DNA of 63,988 nucleotides, filler included, from Octopus bimaculoides (lineage: Eukaryota), in the NCBI RefSeq assembly GCF_001194135.2. It is 7 parts of 5 records of this genome, joined end to end, with 100 filler letters (N's around TTAATTAATTAA, not from the genome) between each part and the next. Parts side by side here need not be neighbours in the genome. Positions count along the whole stretch, not along the records: positions 56,523 to 62,771 come from NC_068983.1; 6 more parts are not named here. One strand, given 5' to 3'. Below, piece by piece: positions 32,421 through 62,771 of this stretch (positions are counted from its first letter, which is position 1; every line of letters starts with the position of its first letter). A program made the position numbers and the translations under genes. Under the pieces are notes generated by a model. The model was not told the DNA's origin and did no database searches. It saw only the letters and a list, made by a program, of their open reading frames with translations.

Positions 32421-32627
32421 TAATTGATAATAATAATGATAATAATAATGATGATGATGATGAGATGGAAGAGGTGGGGAGGAGGAGGAGATGGAAGAAG
32501 AAGGGAGGCGGAGGAGGTGGAGGAGGCNNNNNNNNNNNNNNNNNNNNNNNNNNNNNNNNNNNNNNNNNNNNTTAATTAATTAANNNNNNNNNNNNNNNNN
32601 NNNNNNNNNNNNNNNNNNNNNNNNNNN

Positions 32628-33034
32628 TCTCTTCACTCCCACTTCTCTTCACCCCTACTCTTTCTCTCTTCTCCCTTATTCTCTCCTCTCTCTTACTCTC
32701 TCTCTCTCTCTTCTCTCGTACTCCCCCCTCTCTCACTCTTACACTCTACACTCTTACTCTCTTACTCTCTCACCTTTACTCTCTCACTCTCTTCTATCTT
32801 TCCCTCTCTCTCACTCTCTCTCACTCTTACTCTCTACATTCTTACTCTCTTACTCTCTCACCCTTACTCTCTCACTCTTCTCTCTTCCCTCTCACTCACT
32901 CTCTTTCTCTTTCCCTCTTTCTCTCCCCCATACCCCTCTTCCCTCTCTCCCACTCTCTTCTCTCTCACTCTCTTCTCTCTCACTCTCTTCTCTCTCACTC
33001 TCTTCTCTCTCACTCTCTTCTCTCTCACTCTCTT
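32628..33034. repeat. CT-rich low-complexity/minisatellite (CTCACTCTCTTCTCT units)
   Basis: Directly visible; it yields the ESEREES repeat ORF. Confidence 0.9.
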
Positions 33035-33964
33035 NNNNNNNNNNNNNNNNNNNNNNNNNNNNNNNNNNNNNNNNNNNNNNNNNNNNNNNNNNNNNNNNNN
33101 NNNNNNNNNNNNNNNNNNNNNNNNNNNNNNNNNNNNNNNNNNNNNNNNNNNNNNNNNNNNNNNNNNNNNNNNNNNNNNNNNNNNNNNNNNNNNNNNNNNN
33201 NNNNNNNNNNNNNNNNNNNNNNNNNNNNNNNNNNNNNNNNNNNNNNNNNNNNNNNNNNNNNNNNNNNNNNNNNNNNNNNNNNNNNNNNNNNNNNNNNNNN
33301 NNNNNNNNNNNNNNNNNNNNNNNNNNNNNNNNNNNNNNNNNNNNNNNNNNNNNNNNNNNNNNNNNNNNNNNNNNNNNNNNNNNNNNNNNNNNNNNNNNNN
33401 NNNNNNNNNNNNNNNNNNNNNNNNNNNNNNNNNNNNNNNNNNNNNNNNNNNNNNNNNNNNNNNNNNNNNNNNNNNNNNNNNNNNNNNNNNNNNNNNNNNN
33501 NNNNNNNNNNNNNNNNNNNNNNNNNNNNNNNNNNNNNNNNNNNNNNNNNNNNNNNNNNNNNNNNNNNNNNNNNNNNNNNNNNNNNNNNNNNNNNNNNNNN
33601 NNNNNNNNNNNNNNNNNNNNNNNNNNNNNNNNNNNNNNNNNNNNNNNNNNNNNNNNNNNNNNNNNNNNNNNNNNNNNNNNNNNNNNNNNNNNNNNNNNNN
33701 NNNNNNNNNNNNNNNNNNNNNNNNNNNNNNNNNNNNNNNNNNNNNNNNNNNNNNNNNNNNNNNNNNNNNNNNNNNNNNNNNNNNNNNNNNNNNNNNNNNN
33801 NNNNNNNNNNNNNNNNNNNNNNNNNNNNNNNNNNNNNNNNNNNNNNNNNNNNNNNNNNNNNNNNNNNNNNNNNNNNNNNNNNNNNNNNNNNNNNNNNNNN
33901 NNNNNNNNNNNNNNNNNNNTATATATATATATATATATATATATATCGCAGGTATAGCTATGTG

Positions 33965-36270
33965 TTATGAAGTATGTATTTAAACTTAGCGAGGAAAAAT
34001 GCGAATTGTTCATGCCAGAAATAAAGTATCTAGAGCAAGTTTTCGATAAAAATTTTGTCGCAGGTGAGATCCTTCAAGATCGGCTGCAAAAAAAAAAAAA
34101 AATTTCCTTTCCTGTAAACTATTGCAACGTTATAAGCGTTCTTAGGGCTCACAAACTATTACCAAACATATATGCGGAATATGCATGTGCTAAGAGCACC
34201 CATAACAACCTATTGAAAAAAGACCTTAAATGGTATTGGTCGGATAGGTACCAAAAAGCGTTCGTAGAAATTATAGCACTTTGATCCAAATTTTAAAATA
34301 GTAGTAGTACCATATCCTAGTGAAAGTGGTATACGAGCGTTAATTTTACAAGCTTACGTTTCACGCTTATGCTTCACGTTCATTGATGGCGGCTGAAAAG
34401 AAACTACAGCCAAATGGAGAAGGAGACATTAGCCATTATTTTTGCAGTGGAAAAATTTCACAAATTCATACACAGAAAGATATTCAGACTGCAGACAGAT
34501 CACCACAGAGTGTTGTCAATTTATGGATCGAAAAGAGTATCCCCATGCATACAGCCAATCGATTGCAGCGCTAGGGACAATCGTGCTAAATTATGACTTT
34601 AAGATGGATTTTCTACCATCGAAAACAAGACATTCGGATGGGCTGTCAAGATTGATACCTAAATGCAATAAACCGTTAGAGGACACAGTAATAGTGACAT
34701 GAAAACCTGAAATCGAAATGCAAAATATACTCTGCAACGTAGTACATGAACTACCTCTCACTGTAGAGGAAATAAAAATTAAAGCAGAGAAGGATGTGTT
34801 TATAATAAAAATGAAAATGATGAATTTTCAAACAAATGCATAAAATTATGTAGTTGAGCTGACAGTTTCGAAATGGTATTCCATATGTGATGGCTTAATT
34901 ATGTACGCTCAGAGGGTATGCTAAAAGAATTCCACATGGGACATCCAGGAATTACGAGAATGAAAGCACTGATGAGGAGCTACATTTACTGGCCGAATAT
35001 AGATTTGGATATTGAAAGATTGGTGAAATTCTCCAGGGGTTTGCCCTGGCAGCAAAAGCACTACCAATAAAAATTCAGCCGTGGTTCAAGACTGGCATAT
35101 CTTCATCCTGATTAGACATAGACTTCGCAGGAGCATCAAAGCGACAGTTACACGAAATAGCCGGAAATGTATAAACGTAGAAATCAAACCTCCAAAGTAA
35201 CAAAGAAATTTCTGGACGAACTTTTTGCGCAATATGGCAGACACTATAGTGTCTGAAGACGAACACAGTTCACGTCGAAGAAGTTTAGAAATTTTTGCAA
35301 AATGCATGCAGTGGAGTATATTACTACTCCGCCATACCATCCGAGATTTAATGGACTAGCGGAACGTTTTGTAGACACGTTTAAGAGGGCGCTGAAAAAT
35401 CTAGGAATGAGCTAGTAGCTGATATTGCATTGACGCAATTCTTAAGTGTCTACTGAATAACACCTAACTCCAACTCCACTTCAGGTATGACGCCGGTTGA
35501 AGTAATGCATGCCAGGAAAGTCAGGTCGGTGTTTGACAAATTACTACCAGAAGAAAAGAAAAAATGGAGAGAAACACCGAAATTAAGATAAAAAAAACTT
35601 CAAAAACAGTGACAATGTGATTTTGAAAGTATAGAGAAATGGAAAGGAAAGTTGAGAAGAAGGTATAATAAGTAACCGTTCAGGAAAAATAACGTACATG
35701 GTAAAAGGTAATACGTGGGAATACAAAATACATTTAAACCAAATGAAAAAAGTTTTAGGGAAGAGAAAATAAGACATGAAGAACCAATGGAATTTCTTTA
35801 TGAGGTTTTTGACATCTCGGTACCTCAAGGAATAGTCGAACCAACGAGTACATCGGCTTGGAAAAGAAAACAAACAGAACTTTTGCAAGCCAAAACGAAA
35901 AAATATTCCAGTCTTTTTCCGGGGAATTGCGTAATAAAGGGGGGAGAGGCGGTAATTAATATATAAGAAATAAAAGAAAAATATTGACTTCTAAGGAAAG
36001 TCAAGCTCAGAAAGGTGAGATGTGGTGAAATCCTGACACCCCTGTGGGATAACGAGTGAACGGTTCTAAACCTTATAAAGACGCATGTGTTCTGACAGTG
36101 CGAGGTACACTGTGGTGTGTGCAGTCGCATTTGTGAAGGAAATCGTAGAAGACGTTGGGAAGAGATACAATTTTGTTACGTGTTTGTTACTGATTTAGGT
36201 TCTGTAATGTTATAACCCTGTTACCGTGTAGTCTATTTCTAAACTCTAGAATATAATATATATATAGAGA
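33965..36270 (+). mobile_element. Ty3/Gypsy LTR retrotransposon remnant: RT end, RNase H, integrase, PPT and 3' LTR
   Basis: KCELFMPEIKYL; EKETLAIIFAVEKFHKFI..QTDH; HMGHPGITRMKALMRSYIYWP; YITTPPYHPRFNGLAERFVDTFKRALK. The RT-RH-IN order is Gypsy-type. PPT AAAGGGGGGAGAG lies at 35936-35948, and the LTR end is approximate. Many frameshifts. Confidence 0.9.
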
Positions 36271-36962
36271 CATATGCACATACACATATAGGTGTACATA
36301 TGTATATTTTAATCAATAAGTAGCTTTTGTTTCAAAATAGTTTAGTAACTTTCAATACTTCAGCTCACGTGCGCATAAACGCGTAAGAATATTACGTATA
36401 CGTAACTATAGATTTTCAAAAAAATTTCATAAATTATAACAGTAATTATAATTATCTGTTAATTGTAAGTCTTTTAATACAACTGGGTAACTGTTAATGA
36501 ATTTCCTAAGACATTAATTACTTTGCTTACATTAATCTATCATAAGTAACAATGCCAATTCCTGTTAAAGTAGTCGTATAATTTAAGGTAAAGGGTACTA
36601 TTATTTTTGTCAATACATTACGCACGCATACACATAGATGTATTAAACAAATATGCATATTCACATATACTAGTAACGGTTTATTATTAAATACGTTCGT
36701 TGCTAAAGTACACATATCTGAGTTTATAGAGCGACAAACAACGCATTGAGTGTAACTCCTTTCTATGAAGTTCTGCTGCTGATGAAATTCCTGATTAATG
36801 ATATTCTATATGGAAATTTATTTATTTATATTAATTCCTCAAATTCAAGTAATTGGGGATGGAAAGAGATTTAGGAGAATGGAATTTGATATTGTACAGA
36901 ATAGACATCAATTCTAATAAATTGATGTCGATGTGATAGTATTTCAATTTAGTTCTTCCTAT

Positions 36963-37016
<54 letters not shown>

Positions 37017-37759
37017 TGTGTATACTTTATTTAAAAGCAGCAGAAATATAACAAAAAGCCGTTACTCAGAGTTTCACGTTCCCGTTCATGTTAGAAATGG
37101 GAGAGAAATGACGATACGATTAAAACTAATATAAATTAAAACATGCATCTATTTCTTTGTTCGTTTCAAATAATGGTCTTAGGTATGCAATTAACAAAAT
37201 AAACAAAACAAATGAATTCAATATAGATTCAACCTATTTTTAAAAAGTCAAAAGTTTACAACAATATATACGCATACTAGACTATCTACAACATACATAT
37301 ATACGTCAAAATACGTAGATGCATACGTACAGACAACATACGTATATAAGCATATATTTGTAAGACATAAATACATGCACGAATACGCATGTATACATAT
37401 ACACATATGTACGCAATCATTCTCGCATACGAAAATTATTCAGTGCTGGAACAGGCAAGTGTATCATAAACTTATGGAGGAGGAAAGTAAGGGATGAGAA
37501 AAGAAACGTATAGATAAAGGATGGTACAAATGTAGAAAGGGAGAAAGTGTGGTTTCCTGAGGAAAGGAAGAAAGAAAGAAAGAAAGCAGGCAAGAAAGAA
37601 GGAAAGATAGAAGGGAAGAAAGAAGTAGAGAAAGAGAGAAAGAAGAAAAGAAATAAAGGAAGTGGAGTGTATATAACAAACGCACACACAATTGGATTAC
37701 ATATATATGTGTATACAAAAATGTATATTAGCATAACGTATACAGATATATAGGGATAT

Positions 37760-39085
37760 AGTCAACTAGCCCCTCTTCATGGGTGATTTGAAACTGTTCG
37801 TGAGCACAGTCCACTGTTTTAGTACTGATATTAGAATAGAATTTGGACACAAGAAGTGCGGAATAATCTACCTAAAAAGAGGCAAGGTATAGCCCCTAGC
37901 AGGGATAAAATTACCGAATAGAAACTTGATTAAATAAATTGAAGAAGAAGGATACAAATACCTTGGTGTACTAGAGTTCAACGAGATAGTTATGGATCAG
38001 GGGAAATCGCATCGATAGTAGAAGAACTAAAGAGCTAAAACTGAAAGACAAGGACGTTGCTGACTAGATATGGGATACTCCACCCCAAAAGTAATAGAGA
38101 CAGACTGTATGTACCAAGAAAACAATGGGTAAGAGCCCAGCATTAGATCAGAAGAAAAGAACCTAGTATGGTATGTAAAAAATGCCACAGAACCACTATT
38201 ATTGGAAGCAAAAAGGTCATGCTTGTGTAGGATGGATAATTGCAAAGATAAAGCACTGTACAAGCACTTGAGAATGAATGAAACTGAAAATGGGTGGGTA
38301 AAGAAAAGAATGCATGGACATCGTGATAGAAATGTTGAAGATAAGAGAAAAAAATTATGGCTATGGATGCCTAAAAGTGATTTAAAGCCGGAAACGGAGG
38401 CTCTAATCTGTGCTGCCCAACTGCAAGCATTAAGAACCGATTACATCAAATACAGAATAGACAACGCATTAGAAAGTGATAAGTGCAGAATTTGTGCACA
38501 AAATTTCTGAAACCGTATGGCATATTAGCAGTCAATGTACGCCACTAGCCCAGAATGAATATAGGAGACGTCAAATAGCAAGGCTTGTCGATTGGGCACT
38601 TGGCAGAAAGTATGTACTTCACAGAGCAAAAAAGTGGTACGAACATAAACCAGAAGGCTTCATCAAAAATGATAATGCAAAGATCCTACGGGATTTTATG
38701 ATTCAGTGCGACTATGAGATAGAGAAAAGGAAACGAGATATATTGTTAATTAAGAAAGAAAGCAAACGATGTTGGATCATAGATATAGCATGCCAAGCTG
38801 ACAAGGTATGCGATAAGGAATAAAGGACAAGTCGATAGATTTGACAGGTTATCCTGGGAGGTTAAGCAGTTGTGTTCGCTGGAAAAGAGGGTAGTAGTAC
38901 TGATAATTGTCGGACCCCTGGGAACAGTGAGTAAAAATCTTGAGAAATACATGGGACAAATAGGGTCTACTTGGAACTGCCCAAATACACCGGATGGTGC
39001 GCAAAACATAAGGTGTGTTACCTTAGTTCACTGATAATGAACAGCTGGCACCGTAGTACATCTCCAGCTTTAGAAGCTGTGAAAA
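37760..39085 (+). mobile_element. R4/Dong-like RLE non-LTR retrotransposon, 5'-truncated and degraded
   Basis: RT end LFMGDLKLF..EFGHKKC..GYKYLGVLE; LHPKSNRDRLYVPRK; CCHC knuckle CRICAQN.ETVWHISSQC; RLE-like RDILLIKKESKRCWIIDIAC. It ends directly in (AAT)n at 39086. Confidence 0.85.
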
Positions 39086-56422: not shown

Positions 56423-56549
56423 NNNNNNNNNNNNNNNNNNNNNNNNNNNNNNNNNNNNNNNNNNNNTTAATTAATTAANNNNNNNNNNNNNNNNNNNNNN
56501 NNNNNNNNNNNNNNNNNNNNNNATATATATATATATATATATATATAGT

Positions 56550-56687
56550 AATAAGAAAATGGATGGGATCATGAGGCGGTATTCATCAACTTTTAGACAT
56601 TATATTATGTCTATTTATTTAATAGACATAATATAATGTCTAAAAGTTGATGAATACCACTTCTTCATCCCCCTCCATTTTCTTATT
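56550..56687. repeat. Hairpin with perfect 38-bp inner stem (56578-56615 / 56621-56658) and imperfect outer stem
   Basis: GGTATTCATCAACTTTTAGACATTATATTATGTCTATT, loop TATTT, then its exact reverse complement. Confidence 0.95.
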
Positions 56688-57105
56688 GCCATATAAATTA
56701 AGGGTAAAACAACTTTTACCCTCACACATTTCTTACAGTCAGTAGTGTAATTGCCATGCAATGAAAATACACTTACGTAATAATAATTGGGTATTGTATC
56801 AGCAGTATACTGGATAGATATTATCCCTTAGTTGGTTGGATTTACAACCTGTAACTCTCTTGAATTAGAGTGTATGTGTGTGCGTTTGTACGTGCGTATG
56901 TGTTGTATGCGTGTGTGTGTTGTTATAGTTGTTCAACATAACATCGAAATGATTTCCAAAGTTGTACCCTCGTATTATTTATATAAAGACATTCATCCAA
57001 TCACATTCCTTTTCATGCATACATGAAGCTTCTACGCTACCTCCTTTGTAAAAGTATCGTTTATCTATAGTTATAAAATATGATAGATTTCAATGCTATA
57101 CTCAC

Positions 57106-57216
57106 ATGCACGACAGTATCGTCCGCTATATCCAGGTCGGCATTTACAGCTGAAGCTCCGTCCTCTTCCAATACAAACGCCACCGTTCCCGCAAGGTCTC
57201 CTGTGGCATGGATTAA
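57106..57216 (-). CDS. EGF-like domain exon (third in transcript order): NPCHRRPCGNGGVCIGRGRSFSCKCRPGYSGRYCRA
   Basis: Acceptor TTTGTTCTTTTATGCGCTAG, donor GTGAGT, 111 bp, phase 1-1, open frame, C-x4-C-x5-C-x8-C-x-C-x8-C spacing. Confidence 0.9.
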
Positions 57217-57617
57217 CTAGCGCATAAAAGAACAAATAAAAGTCTTATTTCACAGTCTTATGTTTTTTACAATGCAATAACAGTAAGATTTCCTTTAAAA
57301 AATGCCCCATTAATTGCCCTTACTGATTTTCCATTTTTGTGTCTCCTTCTTCATGTTTTTCTTTTGTCTCCCCTGTTTTTCCTCACTTACAGCATGAAAA
57401 AAATAATTCCAGAAACGTTAAGACTGTCAGGCGATGGTGTGGGGGAATTCAAATATAGGCACAAACATATAAATGCACACATACACACACACACACACAC
57501 ACANNNNNNNNNNNNNNNNNNNNNNNNNNNNNNNNNNNNNNNNNNNNNNNNNNNNNNNNNNNNNNNNNNNNNNNNNNNNNNNNNNNNNNNNNNNNNNNNN
57601 NNNNNNNNNNNNNNNNN

Positions 57618-57650
<33 letters not shown>

Positions 57651-57659
57651 ACGGATACA

Positions 57660-58740
57660 TTATTTCCATTATTTACAATTGACGGATATTTGTCCACTTC
57701 TTGTTTGTTGCTAACACAACGTTTCGGTTGATATACCCTCCAGCCTTCTTCAGGTGTCTTGTGGAAATTTCGAACCTGGGTTCTCATTCCTAAGATATTT
57801 TTCGATGTTATTATTATTATTCAGGTTACTACTTTTAGTAGTCCGCGTTCTTAACCACTACACCATATGCCTGTGGACAATTACGGAGTGAATTTTAAGG
57901 CTTATAAATCTAATATTTTTCTATCCTTCCTTAATACCGGTTCCCATATGCTGCCCATACCTGCACTCGGTCTGCTTAGGAGGTTGTTGTGTCCTAGCAT
58001 ATGTGCTGCTTCTTTTAGTTTTCGTATTTTCCAGTGGTGTTCTCTGTCTATTATTTTAACTTCATCCCACAGGGGGAGGTGGTTTCCATTTTTCCATACA
58101 TGATCAGCTATACCCGATTTATCAATATTTCCCCGTGTCACAGCTTTGCGATGTTCCTCTACCCTTATTTTGAGGAGGCGACATGTTTCACCTTTGTATA
58201 AACTACCACAGCTGCATGGGATGGAGTACACGCAGTTCTTAAATCATATTCTCTTCTATTGGTGGTTTTACTAGAAGGATATATTAACGAAGTGCTGTAT
58301 TACTTTTGAATACTGTCCTGATGTCATGTGGACCGCATATCTTTCGTAACTTTTTGGAGAGGCCTTTCACATAGGGTAGACAGACTGTGGACAGTATATT
58401 GGCCTCATCTTCTCTCTTCTTCATAGTTGAAGTGGATAGTACATTTCAGCTAGTTGTTGCTTAACAGATCGTTATTGAGCTTGATCATTTCTTCGTAGTG
58501 TGTATTACGATCGCTACTTATATTCTTTTGTTTTAGGCACGGGTGTTTTAGACACTAAGCTATCCCTCTCTTTACACTATATGGATGGTGGGAATTGAAG
58601 TTGAGGTATCGTCCAGTAAAGGTCGGCTTGCTGTATACGGATGTCCTGAATTCATACTTGGTGCGTCTTATTAATACCTCCAGGAATGCCAGCTGCTTGT
58701 CTTTTTCCTTTTCCATTGTGAATGGATGGCTTTATTGAGT
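57660..58740 (-). mobile_element. Penelope-like element remnant: RT thumb end, GIY-YIG endonuclease and 3' terminal repeat
   Basis: FTMEKEKDKQLAFLEVLI..SVYSKPTFTGRYLNFNSHHP, then VYSIPCSCGSLYKGETCR..IRVEEHR..SGIADH..KLKEA. Confidence 0.9.
57713..57758 (-). ncRNA. Minimal type I hammerhead ribozyme in the Penelope 3' repeat
   Basis: GACAC-CTGAAGA-A-GGCTG(10 nt)CAACC-GAAA-CG-TT-GTGTT: intact core, 5-bp helix I, stem II with one C-A mismatch, and palindromic AACGTT. Predicted cut after GUU. Confidence 0.65.
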
Positions 58741-58779
58741 TCACATGATCTAACAGCACTTGAAAATCTTAGAACTGTA

Positions 58780-58944
58780 TATACAACGACCTTCTTTCAG
58801 TGCCCGTCTATCAAATCTGCTCAAAAGGCTTTAGTTGGCCGAGGCTATAGTTGAAGACATCTGCGAAAGGTGCCAGACAGTGGGACTGAACCTAATAACA
58901 TGTGCTTGGGAAGCTAACTTTTACTACACACCCACGCCAGTGAT

Positions 58945-58945
<1 letters not shown>
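58780..58945 (-). mobile_element. SINE family A head (co-duplicated with the EGF unit)
   Basis: It ends ..CCACGCCAGTGATT, exactly as the copy at 61745-61905. Confidence 0.8.
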
Positions 58946-58975
<30 letters not shown>

Positions 58976-59028
58976 ATGCATGTATATATGTGTGTGTGTA
59001 TGAATATTTATATATGTAAATATGAATG

Positions 59029-59072
<44 letters not shown>

Positions 59073-59312
59073 TGTGAGTGTGTATATGTGTGTGTTTGTA
59101 CGTGTGTGTTTGTTGTTGTTGGTCAACGAACCAACCAAATGATTTCCAAAGTTGTGCCCGCGTATTATTTACATCAAGACATTCATCCAATCACATTCCT
59201 TTTCATACTTAAATGAAACTTCTACCTCAGCTCCTTTGCAATACGCCTGCACTTGTAAAAGTATCGTTAATCTATAGCTATAAAATATAATTGTTTCCAA
59301 TGTTATACTCAC

Positions 59313-59423
59313 ATGCAAGACAGTATCGTCCGCTATATCCTGGTCGGCATCTACAGGCGAAGCTCCGTCCTCTTCTAAAACATACGCCACCGTTCTTGCA
59401 AGGTCTCCTATGGCATGGATTGA
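59313..59423 (-). CDS. EGF-like domain exon (second in transcript order): NPCHRRPCKNGGVCFRRGRSFACRCRPGYSGRYCLA
   Basis: Same acceptor and GTGAGT donor, 111 bp, phase 1-1, six Cys conserved. Confidence 0.9.
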
Positions 59424-59649
59424 CTAGCGCATAAAAGAACAAATAAAAGTCCTATTTCACAGTCTTATGTATTTTTACAATGCAATAACAGTGGGGTTTC
59501 CTTTTATTAATGCCCCCTTTATTTTCCTTACTTATTTCTCATTTTTGCTTTTCTCTCTCTCTCTGTATAATTTTCTTTTGTCTCCCCTATTTCTCCCTCA
59601 AAGAATGAAAAATAAAGATTTCGGAAATGTTAAGCATAAAACTATTATT

Positions 59650-59982
59650 TTATTCTTTCAGTCTACGAGCATGCTGGAGCAGCGCCTTAAAAGGTTTTAG
59701 TGGAAGAAATCGACCCCAAGACGTACTTGTTGTAAGCCTAGTACTTATTTTAACTAGGCACTTTTGCTGAACCGCTAAGTTACGGGGACGTAAACACTCC
59801 AACATCGGTTGTCAGGCGATGTTGGGGGAGGTCACATATAGGCACACAAACACATATAAATACATATGTATATATTGTTTCCATCTATCAAATCCGCTCA
59901 CAAGGCTTTGGTTGGCCCGAGGCTATAGTAGAAGACACTTGCGGAAGATGGAACGTGCTTGGGAGCAAGCTTTGTACCACAC
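59650..59982 (-). mobile_element. SINE family A in the EGF intron
   Basis: The 3' end, body and head are recognisable up to the gap. Confidence 0.8.
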
Positions 59983-60187
59983 NNNNNNNNNNNNNNNNNN
60001 NNNNNNNNNNNNNNNNNNNNNNNNNNNNNNNNNNNNNNNNNNNNNNNNNNNNNNNNNNNNNNNNNNNNNNNNNNNNNNNNNNNNNNNNNNNNNNNNNNNN
60101 NNNNNNNNNNNNNCGAAGAAACAACGTGAGGACGTGGAATAAGTACATTGTTATTAGACGCTCAGGAAAGGAAAGAAAAAAATGAGG

Positions 60188-60222
60188 ATTTAACGTATCG
60201 ATCGGAGATCTTCGTCAGAAAT
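60188..60222 (-). ncRNA. Minimal hammerhead-like motif (GAAA mutated to GAUA) in a Penelope-like fragment (~60114-60240)
   Basis: ATTT-CTGACGA-A-GATC(TCC)GATC-GATA-CG-TT-AAAT: intact CUGACGA, perfect stem II, and 4-bp helix I. Confidence 0.5.
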
Positions 60223-60475
60223 ATAGGAAAAGTTCAGTGTGCGAGAGAGAGAGAGAGTGTGTGTGTGTGTGTTTGTTCTTGTTGTTCAACATAACATCGA
60301 AATTATTTCCAAAATTGTACACTGACGTTATTTACGTAAAGCCATTCATCCAATCACATCCTTTTCATACATAAATGAAGCTTCTACCTCACCTCCTCTG
60401 CAACTCATTCTACACTTGTAAAAGCATCGTTAATCTACAGCGATAAAATATGATTGTTTTCAATGCTATACTCAC

Positions 60476-60586
60476 ATGCATGACAGTATCGTCCGCTATA
60501 TCCAGGTCGACATTTACAGCTGAAGCTCCGTCCTCTTCCAATACATGCGCCACCGTTCTTGCAAGGTCTCCTATGGCATGGATTAA
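60476..60586 (-). CDS. EGF-like domain exon (first in transcript order): NPCHRRPCKNGGACIGRGRSFSCKCRPGYSGRYCHA
   Basis: Same acceptor and GTGAGT donor, 111 bp, phase 1-1, six Cys conserved. Confidence 0.9.
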
Positions 60587-60819
60587 CTAGCGCATAAAAG
60601 AACAAATAAAATTCCTATTTCACAGTCTTATGTATTTTTACAATGCAATAACAGTGGGCTTTCTTTTTATTAATGTGCCCTTCATTGTCTTTACGTATAT
60701 TCCATTTTTGCTTCTAACTCTTTATGTGTTTTTGTTTTCTTGTCTCACCTATTTCTCCCTCACTTACAGCATGAAAAAAAGGATTTTTAAAAATGTTAAG
60801 CATAAAACTTCATTCTCTT

Positions 60820-61030
60820 ATTCTTTCAATCATTTGACTGCGCCCATGCTGGGGCACCGCGTTAATGGGTTTTAATCCGAGAGATCGACCCCATGAGTTA
60901 TTACTTGTCAGCATAATACTATTTTTATTTGGTGACTTTTGCTGAACCTCTATGTTATGGGGGCGTAAACACACCAAAACTTGTAGCCAAGAATAGTGGG
61001 GGGGCTGATATAAGCACACACACACATAAT
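60820..61030 (-). mobile_element. SINE family A 3' half, diverged
   Basis: TCATTTGACTGCG.CCATGCTGG.GCACCGC.TTA; same position relative to the EGF exon as the 59650 copy. Confidence 0.75.
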
Positions 61031-61419
61031 TACATATATATATATATATATANNNNNNNNNNNNNNNNNNNNNNNNNNNNNNNNNNNNNNNNNNNNNNNN
61101 NNNNNNNNNNNNNNNNNNNNNNNNNNNNNNNNNNNNNNNNNNNNNNNNNNNNNNNNNNNNNNNNNNNNNNNNNNNNNNNNNNNNNNNNNNNNNNNNNNNN
61201 NNNNNNNNNNNNNNNNNNNNNNNNNNNNNNNNNNNNNNNNNNNNNNNNNNNNNNNNNNNNNNNNNNNNNNNNNNNNNNNNNNNNNNNNNNNNNNNNNNNN
61301 NNNNNNNNNNNNNNNNNNNNNNNNNNNNNNNNNNNNNNNNNNNNNNNNNNNNNNNNNNNNNNNNNNNNNNNNNNNNNNNNNNNNNNNNNNNNNNNNNNNN
61401 NNNNNNNNNNNNNNNNNNN

Positions 61420-61740
61420 CAGACGAGAAAAATTATTTGTGTATGAACGCTGTGAGGCACGAACTTGAAAGTAGGGACGAGGTAGTTCGCGTGTTTGCTC
61501 GGAAGAAAAGGATTATTGACCGGAAGCATGTGACCATGCCGGTGTAAGGGGAAGAGAGAGAGTGGTAGAGGGAGAAACAAAGGGAGGAAGTAGAAGAATA
61601 GGTGAGCAACTAGAGGAAAAGAGAAAGAGAGGAAGTACGAGGGTGGGGGAAAGAGATACGTAGTAGTAACAGAGGAAGAACGAGAGGGGTAAAGCGAGAT
61701 ACGTAGTAGTAAAGAGGAAGAACGAGAGGGGGAAAAATGA
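61420..61740. repeat. Dispersed repeat family X fragment
   Basis: Matches 8975-9070 and 14915-15030. Confidence 0.75.
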
Positions 61741-61744
61741 TGTA

Positions 61745-61905
61745 TACAACTGGCTTCTTTCAGTTTCCGTCTATCAACTCCGCTCACAAGGCCTTGGCTG
61801 GCCCGACGCTATAGTAGAATTGTGCAAAGTGCCACGCAGTGGAACTGAATTCAGAACCATGTGCTTGAGAAGCAAGCTTCTCACCACACAGCCACGCCAG
61901 TGATT
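61745..61905 (-). mobile_element. SINE family A head
   Basis: Matches 51835-51990 and 58780-58945. Confidence 0.85.
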
Positions 61906-61906
61906 C

Positions 61907-61963
<57 letters not shown>

Positions 61964-61977
61964 GTATATATATATAG

Positions 61978-62026
<49 letters not shown>

Positions 62027-62424
62027 ACAATATATAAGGGAATGTAAAATTCCAAACATACAGGAATATTCAATTTAGTACTATCAAATTTAATTTTATA
62101 ATAAATAATATATGTATATAAATATAATTTTGAGTTCACAAGAGATCATTGATAAGATAAGTGATGCCGTTTATTTTATTAATAATGTTTAGCGTTCGAA
62201 TTTATTTATCTAATAACACTATCTTTTTATATGTATTTCTGTTAATAAAGATGTTTACCACTAGTCCACAGATATTATTTTAGATGAATCATACCTTTAA
62301 CTTGAATGATTAGTATTAAGCGTTTGCATTTCATTTATTGTACAAATGAGAGCTTTCCTACAAGGACTGATTTTTTTATTATTTATTTAGTAAGATACGT
62401 TATTTGAATTCTTATTTTTCCTGA

Positions 62425-62530
62425 GACCTGAGAAGTGACCGTATTTTGAGTAAAATATAATCTTGATCAATTTGTTATGAACTGAACTGGTTTTTTCTAC
62501 TATAATGTGGCCACGAAACGCGCGTAGTCA
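62425..62530 (+). ncRNA. Degenerate hammerhead-like motif with long stem II insert
   Basis: GAC-CTGAGAA-GTGACC(68 nt)GGCCAC-GAAA-CGCGCG-TA-GTC: palindromic stem III, GUA site, 3-bp helix I, and one nucleotide missing from the core. Confidence 0.4.
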
Positions 62531-62734
62531 ACACTTTACATTCTATTTTGTCAATTTACTCAGTTGAATTAAATTTTTAGTGCAGTAATTTATAGATTTT
62601 TATGGATTTTATACTTTCCTTTAGATTTTATAGATTTTTAAGTTAGTATTTTGTAGAATACGGTTTTCTTGATGGTGATTGGTCTCCTTCATTGTTTGAA
62701 TTGTATATCGGTGTTTCTTCTTTAAATTATATTC

Positions 62735-62771
<37 letters not shown>

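Follow-up and report, generated by a model that had tools for sequence, protein, structure and literature searches.

Matrilins are secreted proteins in which each EGF module is encoded by one symmetric exon. The EGF foot proteins of mussels contain little else than EGF modules, with a high content of Lys and Tyr/DOPA. Calcium-binding EGF modules (cbEGF) are recognized by the N-terminal consensus D/N-x-D/N-E/Q-C together with a D/N...Y/F hydroxylation consensus between C3 and C4. A structural EGF protein has also been described in Octopus bimaculoides itself: octovafibrin, an egg-tether protein, has Cys at repeat positions 5, 10, 16, 25, 27 and 36, D/N at position 3 and Y/F at position 23 (PMC10336842).

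We analysed a window of 63,988 nucleotides from the genome of O. bimaculoides, one piece of which carries three EGF exons on the minus strand. This piece was 100% identical, gaps included, to positions 32551-38799 of locus L001 (GCA_001194135.2, chromosome record CM046603.1). The spliced peptide of the exons, in the order C-B-A, matched exactly residues 558-668 of the RefSeq protein XP_052822702.1, which bears the automatic name "neurogenic locus notch homolog protein 1". The junctions predicted in the initial annotation, 60476->59423 and 59313->57216, coincide exactly with the ones in this model. The exons had been regarded as hidden and possibly undescribed, but they are already annotated CDS of XP_052822702.1. 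With tblastn and a splice-pattern scan 11 EGF exons of the array were mapped; the three exons first reported as the array are real, but a single array holds all 11, and of the 16 strongly cationic EGF modules in the protein they supply only 3. Orthologues were found in O. sinensis (LOC115209189) and O. vulgaris (CAI9719088.1). The exons are known from the public model, the gene itself has never been studied, and the strong positive charge of the repeats is unusual. Our reading, which we give a probability of about three in four, is that the window holds exons 4-6 of an 11-exon, tandem-duplicated array in one gene, and that this gene encodes a secreted protein of matrix or mucus in which the EGF array is a polycationic spacer.

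Three homologous minus-strand units, each with a 111-bp phase 1-1 exon encoding six Cys and no acidic residue, were confirmed where they had first been placed (Table 1). All three exons are preceded by the acceptor ...ttatgcgctAG and followed by the donor GTGAGT. Exon C gave a tblastn match of 100% at L001 34738-34845, with the AG acceptor and GTGAGT donor in place, and exons B and A are located at L001 35899-36009 and 38106-38216, respectively. The phase-1 peptides are (F)NPCHRRPCKNGGACIGRGRSFSCKCRPGYSGRYCHA for 60586..60476, (F)NPCHRRPCKNGGVCFRRGRSFACRCRPGYSGRYCLA for 59423..59313 and (F)NPCHRRPCGNGGVCIGRGRSFSCKCRPGYSGRYCRA for 57216..57106. It had been stated that none of the exons was listed in its true frame, but the mechanical ORF list contains all three in frame, within the minus-strand ORFs 57071..57235, 59278..59442 and 60435..60605.

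Each module contains 6 Cys, 8-9 Arg/Lys, 2 Tyr and 1-2 Phe, and 0 Asp/Glu. The Cys spacing, read directly from the sequence, is C-x4-C-x5-C-x8-C-x-C-x8-C, as in EGF-like modules. Pfam EGF (PF00008) was found in three stretches of the exon peptides with E=1.9e-19 (70 bits, cut-off 21.5), and hEGF (PF12661) with 53 bits (cut-off 29.3). The modules start with F-N-P-C without any acidic residue and do not fit cbEGF (PF07645), and EGF_CA reached 29.3 bits (cut-off 27) in one stretch only, far under the generic EGF score. The lack of a calcium-binding consensus, as claimed at first, is borne out by the sequence, and each exon codes for exactly one EGF module of the non-calcium-binding type, for which three disulfides are predicted. 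Since the exons are symmetric (phase 1-1), units can be gained, lost or skipped in any number with the reading frame unchanged.

Table 1. Features of the EGF exon array, with positions in the window
Feature	Position	Strand	Description or basis
EGF exon C	60476..60586	-	exon 4 of 11-exon second EGF array; residues ~557-594 of XP_052822702.1; 111 nt, phase 1-1
EGF exon B	59313..59423	-	exon 5 of 11-exon array; residues ~594-631 of XP_052822702.1; 111 nt, phase 1-1
EGF exon A	57106..57216	-	exon 6 of 11-exon array; residues ~631-668 of XP_052822702.1; 111 nt, phase 1-1
Repeat unit C, exon and homologous intron flanks	60255..60830	-	alignment; repeat families D2, D6, D12, D14
Repeat unit B, exon and homologous intron flanks	59090..59660	-	repeat search and alignment
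Repeat unit A, exon and homologous intron flanks	56900..57440	-	repeat search and alignment
SINE-like dispersed repeat, intronic, 234 nt upstream of exon B	59657..59982	-	5' end cut by gap 59983-60113
3' half of homologous SINE copy upstream of exon C	60845..61045	-	5' half in gap 61053-61419; repeats D7, D8
Homologous SINE remnant upstream of exon A	57425..57477	-	adjoins (TG)n/(TA)n microsatellite containing gap 57504-57617; repeat D8
Degenerate retroelement-like insertion, intron between exons B and A	57670..58800	-	broken ORFs, unit spacing
Assembly gap, intronic	57504..57617		at microsatellite
Assembly gap, intronic	59983..60113		at SINE
Assembly gap, intronic, upstream of unit C	61053..61419		interrupts SINE copy

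The three units align over 581 columns with a mean column identity of 89%, and indels are present in the flanking sequence, with none in the exons. Further copies of the SINE-like repeat occur in the L001 locus, some in either orientation. Exons C, B, A and e7 each have one 210-260 nt upstream, always in the same orientation, and both O. bimaculoides and O. sinensis have a same-orientation SINE 200-290 nt upstream of array exons. The duplicated unit may thus have comprised the exon with its flanking intron sequence, including a SINE that had inserted there before, and the array would have grown as such ~1.1 kb units were duplicated in tandem or exchanged by unequal crossing-over. Exons B and A are 2207 nt apart, as compared to a spacing of 1163 nt otherwise; the excess is accounted for by the retroelement-like insertion, which lies outside the gene product. 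The Pfam search gave no family for this insertion, which might be Penelope-like and contain a GIY-YIG domain. Identical gaps are present in the public assembly. As each exon lies with its splice sites within an uninterrupted block, no reading frame crosses a gap.

A different view of the same exons is that they are dead or spurious, i.e. decaying, haplotype or assembly duplicates that were strung together ab initio and that the functional transcript skips. Every unit is on a separate contig between gaps, so that unit order and number depend on scaffolding, and the expression, tissue and exon usage of XP_052822702.1 are taken from the automated RefSeq model. The older RefSeq model XP_014776970.1 lacks exactly residues 446-1043 in frame (598 residues, the whole block including the window exons), so the block could be skipped in some or all transcripts. 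In addition, the young copies give an overall dN/dS of only ~0.6-0.8. However, all six young copies retain splice sites, an open frame, exact length and six Cys, and among their ~26 substitutions no Cys codon was hit and no stop was introduced (neutral P ~0.007). The copies are 6-20% divergent with introns included, and are therefore neither alleles nor assembly duplicates. In the gap-poor assembly of O. sinensis, at least 14 such exons are intact in the orthologous gene, and the old units are 92-93% conserved between O. bimaculoides and O. sinensis. All 3 differences between exons e3 and e4 are synonymous, with 0 nonsynonymous changes, and of the two open frames the EGF frame has the lower dN/dS. 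When old units are compared with young ones, the exon is the best conserved part (79%, in comparison to 59-66% for the flanks and 49% for random sequence). That the young copies have stayed acid-free is not significant when they are taken alone (P ~0.2). Altogether we consider it unlikely that the exons are dead or spurious.

The number of young-type exons was at least 6 in O. bimaculoides and at least 10 in O. sinensis, where three units are 94-96% identical to one another. These differing counts suggest that turnover of the array may be continuing. The window units are 80-87% identical mutually, as compared to 92-93% for orthologous units of the two species, and the three of them therefore predate the O. 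bimaculoides/O. sinensis split. The array had been described as expanding; copy number does differ between octopus species, but the units in the window are not freshly expanded. The proposal that it is cephalopod-specific held in so far as close relatives were found only in octopods (Octopus, Argonauta), but comparable cationic, acid-free 37-aa EGF arrays are present in the soft coral Xenia.

XP_052822702.1 has 1545 aa, in the order signal peptide, 5 cationic EGF, VWA, 1+11 EGF, VWA, 4 near-neutral EGF, VWD and a Cys-rich tail; the group of 11 is the strongly cationic array to which the window exons belong. With the full protein Pfam reported EGF in 20 stretches, VWA twice (~219-404 and 856-1042, with 12 EGF between them) and VWD once (76 bits, cut-off 22.9). 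C8 and TIL were not reported for it by Pfam at E<=0.001, and precomputed matches list both in paralogues. With its last exon 25 kb away, the model is uncertain at the 3' end. No transmembrane segment was found in a scan of XP_052822702.1; the sole hydrophobic 19-aa window is at residues 1-23, and the signal peptide was judged by eye and hydrophobicity only. The whole protein has a net charge of +184 and a pI of 9.7, and its 16 strongly cationic EGF modules contain a single acidic residue in ~600 residues. Array modules have a net charge of ~+8 for every 37 residues, which places them about 4 SD away from EGF modules of the ordinary kind, and among 4,584 EGF modules from 322 other EGF-rich proteins only 0.15% were acid-free with a net charge of at least +7. 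The polycationic acid-free array is thus a real statistical outlier. A secreted polycationic product, as predicted in the initial annotation, is consistent with this net charge and with a hydrophobic segment at the N terminus only, but the EGF-only, Mfp-2-like protein envisaged there proved to be a VWA/EGF/VWD multidomain protein.

According to its RefSeq name the gene would encode a Notch-type signalling receptor or ligand, and the best sequence matches among solved structures were indeed EGF repeats of Delta-like 1 and Notch1. However, Pfam reported no LNR (PF00066), NOD/NODP, ankyrin, DSL or MNNL on the full 1545-aa model, no transmembrane segment is present, VWA and VWD domains are found instead, and the window modules have no cbEGF, O-fucose or O-glucose consensus sites. 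A Notch-type role is therefore extremely improbable. Since Notch-specific domains are absent the name is misleading, and the gene is better described as one for a matrilin/zonadhesin-like secreted protein.

We favour a secreted, polycationic protein, and from its domains the product would be a disulfide-multimerising matrix or mucus glycoprotein, with a matrilin-2-like VWA-EGFn-VWA core and a mucin/zonadhesin-like VWD tail. As a stiff spacer, stapled by disulfides and rich in arginine, the EGF array could bind polyanions (sulfated glycans, mucins) and so cross-link a secreted gel or matrix; the polyanion binding we infer purely from composition. Paralogues of XP_052822702.1 were detected in octopus skin mucus, the proteome of which is enriched for VWD and VWA proteins. 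O. sinensis has paralogues with a cationic EGF array, VWA and VWD, and to their C-terminus the mucus-detected protein shows 94% identity. It is only ~40% identical to XP_052822702.1 in the VWD region and belongs to a different gene. More tentatively, octopods may possess a lineage-restricted secreted VWA/VWD family, in which EGF arrays of varying copy number have been driven to an acid-free, Arg-rich state. In mucus, cartilage or egg envelopes such arrays could serve for cross-linking through their charge, or as a component that coacervates. If true, such a cationic EGF cross-linker would be a material principle undescribed for EGF domains, possibly convergent with a soft-coral protein.

The exon call from raw sequence was correct but rediscovers annotated CDS, and therefore adds no new gene. 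The public models are defective, as the 2015-era O. bimaculoides model drops the 598 residues and the RefSeq O. sinensis models translate 8 such EGF exons out of frame, so that proteomics searches against the latter would miss the array. Together with octovafibrin, the protein makes the octopus a source of EGF-based structural proteins and of candidate biomaterials.

Among known systems, XP_052822702.1 shares with the matrilin-2/VWA2 type the core of VWA, ~12 EGF and VWA, the coding of each EGF module by one symmetric exon and the predicted secretion, and neighbouring family members are named "matrilin-2(-like)" by NCBI. It differs in having a VWD and a Cys-rich tail at the C terminus, with no coiled-coil family (Pfam only), an additional N-terminal EGF array, and EGF modules that are extremely basic and acid-free. 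Membership in the matrilin class was rejected, as the VWA-EGF-VWA order is present but a C-terminal coiled-coil was not reported by Pfam. Zonadhesin, gel-forming mucins and IgGFc-binding protein (VWD-C8-TIL) likewise have VWD followed by a Cys-rich tail, and members of the XP_052822702.1 family are automatically named zonadhesin; however, XP_052822702.1 has only one VWD unit and lacks a mucin PTS domain, and its N-terminal two-thirds are EGF and VWA.

Mfp-2 and Pvfp-5 are likewise secreted material proteins with tandem basic EGF modules. The octopus protein could accordingly be imagined as an underwater adhesive, for example of suckers or egg attachment, with cationic Tyr-bearing EGF modules engaged in cation-pi/DOPA chemistry. 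The Tyr, Phe and Arg/Lys content of the modules would suit this, a PDB sequence search matched PVFP-5 (7qab, E=5.6e-10), and a relative in Argonauta is automatically named "adhesive plaque matrix protein 2-like". The likeness is however generic to EGF, with Notch and Delta repeats scoring far higher, and the octopus modules are Arg-rich and embedded in a protein dominated by VWA and VWD, which are missing from mussel foot proteins. We regard such an adhesive as an unlikely identity for the gene product.

Octovafibrin, from the same species, is a secreted structural rod of 29 tandem 37-aa non-calcium-binding EGF repeats with a Cys register that, counting from Ala, is exactly that of the window repeats (PMC10336842). 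An egg-case or egg-tether fibre protein of this kind, made in the oviducal gland, would also be a tandem 37-aa EGF rod. However, octovafibrin is a different protein with its own gene (XP_014771937.1), which has C-type lectin termini, diverse repeats, several of them with acidic residues, and no VWA or VWD, and it was reported as the sole detectable thread protein. None of its 22 MS/MS peptides was found in 153 proteins (including XP_014776970.1, excluding full XP_052822702.1) or within the three window exon peptides, and several of the peptides are acid-rich. Identity with octovafibrin was rejected, as Pfam shows no lectin domain in XP_052822702.1 and the published peptides are absent from the window exons; a fibre protein of the same kind is improbable.

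XP_046863735.1 of the soft coral Xenia sp. ("Notch protein-like isoform X8") was the sole other protein in the background set with acid-free EGF modules of at least +7, and has 7 such near-identical repeats with a 37-aa period. Its modules are Lys-rich and its flanking domains are different, without VWA or VWD. As Xenia belongs to a distant phylum, convergence is suggested.

Three homologous units were aligned on the minus strand of the piece at 56523-62771 (581 aligned columns, mean column identity 89%), at the places where the initial annotation had put them. A splice-pattern search delimited one exon in each, here named C, B and A. A pyrimidine tract and AG precede every exon and GTGAGT follows it. 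Translated in phase 1, the exons give NPCHRRPCKNGGACIGRGRSFSCKCRPGYSGRYCHA and two near variants, with a Phe codon split T|TT at every junction. Each module contains six Cys and 8-9 Arg+Lys and is devoid of Asp and Glu, as had been described. The Pfam EGF model, a check that had been proposed, matched in three stretches with 70 bits (cut-off 21.5, E=1.9e-19). The true frame had been said to be absent from the ORF track; the mechanical ORF list has all three modules in frame.

Next to these exons we considered the gene to which they belong. When the spliced 110-aa peptide was the query, a word-indexed search gave three weak matches and missed an exact 110-aa match in the same collection, so its silence is not proof of absence. 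An exhaustive profile search, whose top 150 were mostly long multi-EGF proteins, became informative after re-ranking by the best single-repeat score and led to P0013 (XP_014776970.1, O. bimaculoides "notch homolog protein 2-like"). With P0013 as query we found P0154 (XP_052822702.1, "neurogenic locus notch homolog protein 1" [O. bimaculoides], 1545 aa). The spliced C-B-A peptide is identical to residues 558-668 of P0154, and the piece lies at 32551-38799 of its coding locus L001 (GCA_001194135.2 CM046603.1:46175635-46266211) with 100% identity and equal gaps. Therefore the junctions predicted in the initial annotation are exactly those of the current RefSeq model, and the exons it had regarded as hidden and perhaps undescribed are already annotated coding sequence of a misnamed gene, catalogued but unstudied. 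The older P0013 equals P0154 minus residues 446-1043, in frame, the missing part being exactly the 11-EGF array and the second VWA domain, which is why the exons could look unannotated. This omission may stem from incomplete annotation or mark a true large exon-skipping isoform.

Exact database look-ups of the window ORFs and isoform X2 returned no record, and a literature search by accession numbers found no paper mentioning the gene. Papers on the argonaut egg case and the O. maya oviducal gland held nothing specific to the XP_052822702.1 gene, and a homology search for transcript-derived fragments found no octopus RNA-derived sequences. For the predicted expression and exon usage of the array, the basis is the automated model together with evolutionary constraint.

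Features of the window piece and of the second EGF array (array 2); positions are those of the whole stretch except in the last row
Feature	Position	Strand	Remark
Exon C (e4)	60586..60476	minus	111 nt, splice-pattern search
Exon B (e5)	59423..59313	minus	111 nt, splice-pattern search
Exon A (e6)	57216..57106	minus	111 nt, splice-pattern search
70 nt upstream of acceptors	57217-57286; 59424-59493; 60587-60656		95% conserved among six young units vs exon 91%
Phase-0 open frames	57061-57183; 59169-59390; 60410-60553	minus	acidic peptide ...VLEEDGASAVNADLDIADDTV.H
N runs inside piece	57504-57617; 59983-60113; 61053-61419
SINE-like repeat copies/fragments	57425-57477; 58807-58872; 59657-59982; 60845-61045; 61763-61819		internal TA/TG microsatellite
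Degenerate retroelement-like insertion	57670-58800	minus	intron between exons B and A; broken ORFs, e.g. MYSIPCSCGSLYKGETCRLLKIRVEEH...
Near-perfect palindrome	56565-56671		51-nt arms, 92% complementary, 5-nt spacer
CT-rich stretch	61420-61760	minus	43-nt direct repeats at 61622-61707
Array 2 EGF exons e1-e11, starts in L001	25073, 27583, 28659, 34736 (C), 35899 (B), 38106 (A), 40591, 42994, 44282, 45736, 47450		tblastn + splice-pattern scan

P0154 consists of a signal peptide, five cationic EGF modules (38-aa period), a VWA domain, 1+11 EGF modules (37-aa period), of which the 11 are strongly cationic, a second VWA domain, four near-neutral EGF modules, a VWD domain and a Cys-rich tail. Pfam reported no LNR, NOD, ankyrin or DSL domain in P0154 and its sole hydrophobic window is the N-terminal signal; identity as a Notch receptor was therefore rejected. 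The O-fucose consensus C-K-N-G-G-T-C was seen in sister exon e2, and the O-glucose consensus C-H-S-R-P-C in e10 and e11 and in 6 of 10 young exons of the orthologous O. sinensis locus L002 (9896-22952); both are absent from exons C, B and A. A seventh O. sinensis young exon has C-H-S-K-P-C, which also fits the O-glucose consensus. By the consensus patterns of the Notch literature, these are putative sites.

The net charge (K+R-D-E) of P0154 is +184 and its pI 9.7; array 2 alone carries +91, and only one of its 411 residues is acidic. As background we used 4,584 EGF modules of 322 other EGF-rich proteins, whose mean net charge was -0.95 (SD 2.1). Only 0.15% of these modules combined the lack of acidic residues with a net charge of at least +7, and all came from one Xenia soft-coral protein. 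The cationic, acid-free character of the EGF modules is thus a real outlier. The protein from Xenia sp. (XP_046863735.1, P0050) has seven near-identical acid-free EGF repeats with a 37-aa period, and P0217 of another cnidarian, Porites lutea, likewise has runs of strongly cationic EGF modules. These cnidarian runs may have arisen by convergence with those of octopods.

Exons of the window units are 89-94% identical and free of indels, in comparison to 78-86% identity in their flanks. Among the six young units e2-e7, divergence was 8.7% in the exon, 14-20% in the downstream intron and 3.9% in the 70 nt before the acceptor. The excess conservation of the pre-acceptor sequence vanishes against older units; possible causes are a gene-conversion tract or signals required for the splicing machinery to define exons within a repeat array. 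When old units are compared with young ones, the exon is the most conserved part (79%, with 59-66% in flanks and 49% for random sequence). The dN/dS of the young exons is only about 0.6-0.8, and their approximately 26 substitutions spare all Cys codons and create no stop (neutral probability ~0.007). The three differences between e3 and e4 (C) are all synonymous. A second, phase-0 frame is open in all three units and its acidic peptide mirrors the composition of the Arg/Gly codons. We rejected a phase-0 product because of a stop in e7 and a higher dN/dS (0.88-3.8 vs 0.57-0.83 for the EGF frame); Pfam support was also absent, and the phase-0 frame is probably non-functional.

The same frame has entered the public O. 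sinensis models. In XP_036356792.1 and its isoforms the first ~300 residues are "LIHAIADLARTVAYVLEEDGASAVNADLDIADDTVMH" x8, i.e. the 111-nt exon read in phase 0. The models P0267, P0155 and P0268 of the orthologue LOC115209189 read eight EGF exons (L002 9896-24131) in this way, so that the N-terminal ~300 aa are acidic, contain no Cys and lack a signal peptide; in phase 1 the same genomic exons encode cationic EGF modules. The actual 5' end of LOC115209189 appears to lie on an unplaced scaffold, in the "matrilin-2" model P0278, whose signal peptide is shared with the P0154 gene. L002 (GCA_006345805.1 CM016861.1:23644582-23712123), with a single 100-N gap, contains at least 10 exons encoding NPCH[SKT][RK]PCKNGG[VL]CIGRGRSFSCKCRPGYSGR[NH]C[HQ]A and four older cationic exons. 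The idea that the "GRGRSFSC" repeats are exclusive to O. bimaculoides was rejected; it had arisen from the frame shift in the O. sinensis models.

Orthologous old units of the two species are 92-93% identical (measured over the exon and 150 nt of either flank), whereas the window units are 80-87% identical to one another, so their duplication is older than the species split. The O. sinensis units s5-s7, at 94-96% identity, were duplicated after it. A comparison of repeat number across octopus species had been suggested, and for these two it gave at least six young-type exons in O. bimaculoides vs at least 10 in O. sinensis. By these sequence counts the array appears to be still turning over, with a species-dependent copy number. 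An expanding array had been proposed; the three window units are not new.

All exons and splice sites were untouched by the three N runs, and each exon lies in its own unbroken block; the reading frames are therefore free of gaps. Each of the runs adjoins a SINE-like repeat, either at its 5' end or at its internal (TA)n/(TG)n microsatellite, and this repeat is found at the same position in every unit, starting from the exon 210-260 nt in the upstream direction. Breaks in a short-read assembly are to be expected at such sites, and the public assembly carries identical gaps. As every unit is a separate contig, unit order and number rest on scaffolding. Further units could be hidden in gaps, chiefly the 2.5-kb and 1.1-kb gaps bounding the piece, and would leave the frame intact because every unit is 111 nt and phase 1-1. 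The position and orientation of the SINE match in the EGF units of both species, so it is part of the duplicated unit; ARAGORN found no tRNA-like gene in the copies. The insertion between exons B and A gave no Pfam match even at E<=10. It may be a Penelope-like element, with a resemblance to the C-terminal reverse-transcriptase and GIY-YIG portions. The palindrome downstream of unit A may represent a MITE-like element or form a hairpin. The CT-rich stretch, flanked by a gap on one side and on the other by the SINE copy that precedes unit C, has no counterpart in other units.

What remains noteworthy about the gene is how extremely charged its EGF arrays are, together with the faults in public models. 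Automated names in the P0154 family include matrilin-2, zonadhesin, VWA2 and fibropellin. The supplementary table of the octopus skin-mucus proteome lists A0A7E6ERF9 (LOC115209190) and LOC115209496. LOC115209190 adjoins the O. sinensis orthologue of the P0154 gene, and A0A7E6ERF9 shares 94% identity with the C-terminal end of O. sinensis paralogues with a WSC-like N-terminus, cationic EGF (5-9 modules, regex-detected), VWA and VWD. One or more of the cationic-EGF paralogues are therefore secreted into mucus. Published octovafibrin peptides were absent from the window exon peptides and from the protein set compared, which did not include the full model P0154.

Based on its architecture, the mucus paralogue, the octovafibrin precedent and structure matches, we favour P0154 as a putative secreted glycoprotein of matrix or mucus that multimerises and whose Arg-rich rod of EGF modules would bind polyanions. 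Its VWA-EGF12-VWA core matches the architecture of matrilin-2, and its VWD tail that of multimerising secreted proteins. The nearest solved structures by sequence were EGF repeats of Delta-like 1 and Notch1, and mussel PVFP-5 was also matched (E=5.6e-10). In O. bimaculoides itself, octovafibrin demonstrates that load-bearing secreted fibres can be built from 37-aa non-Ca EGF arrays (PMC10336842); its Cys spacing is identical to that of the window modules, but gene and composition differ.
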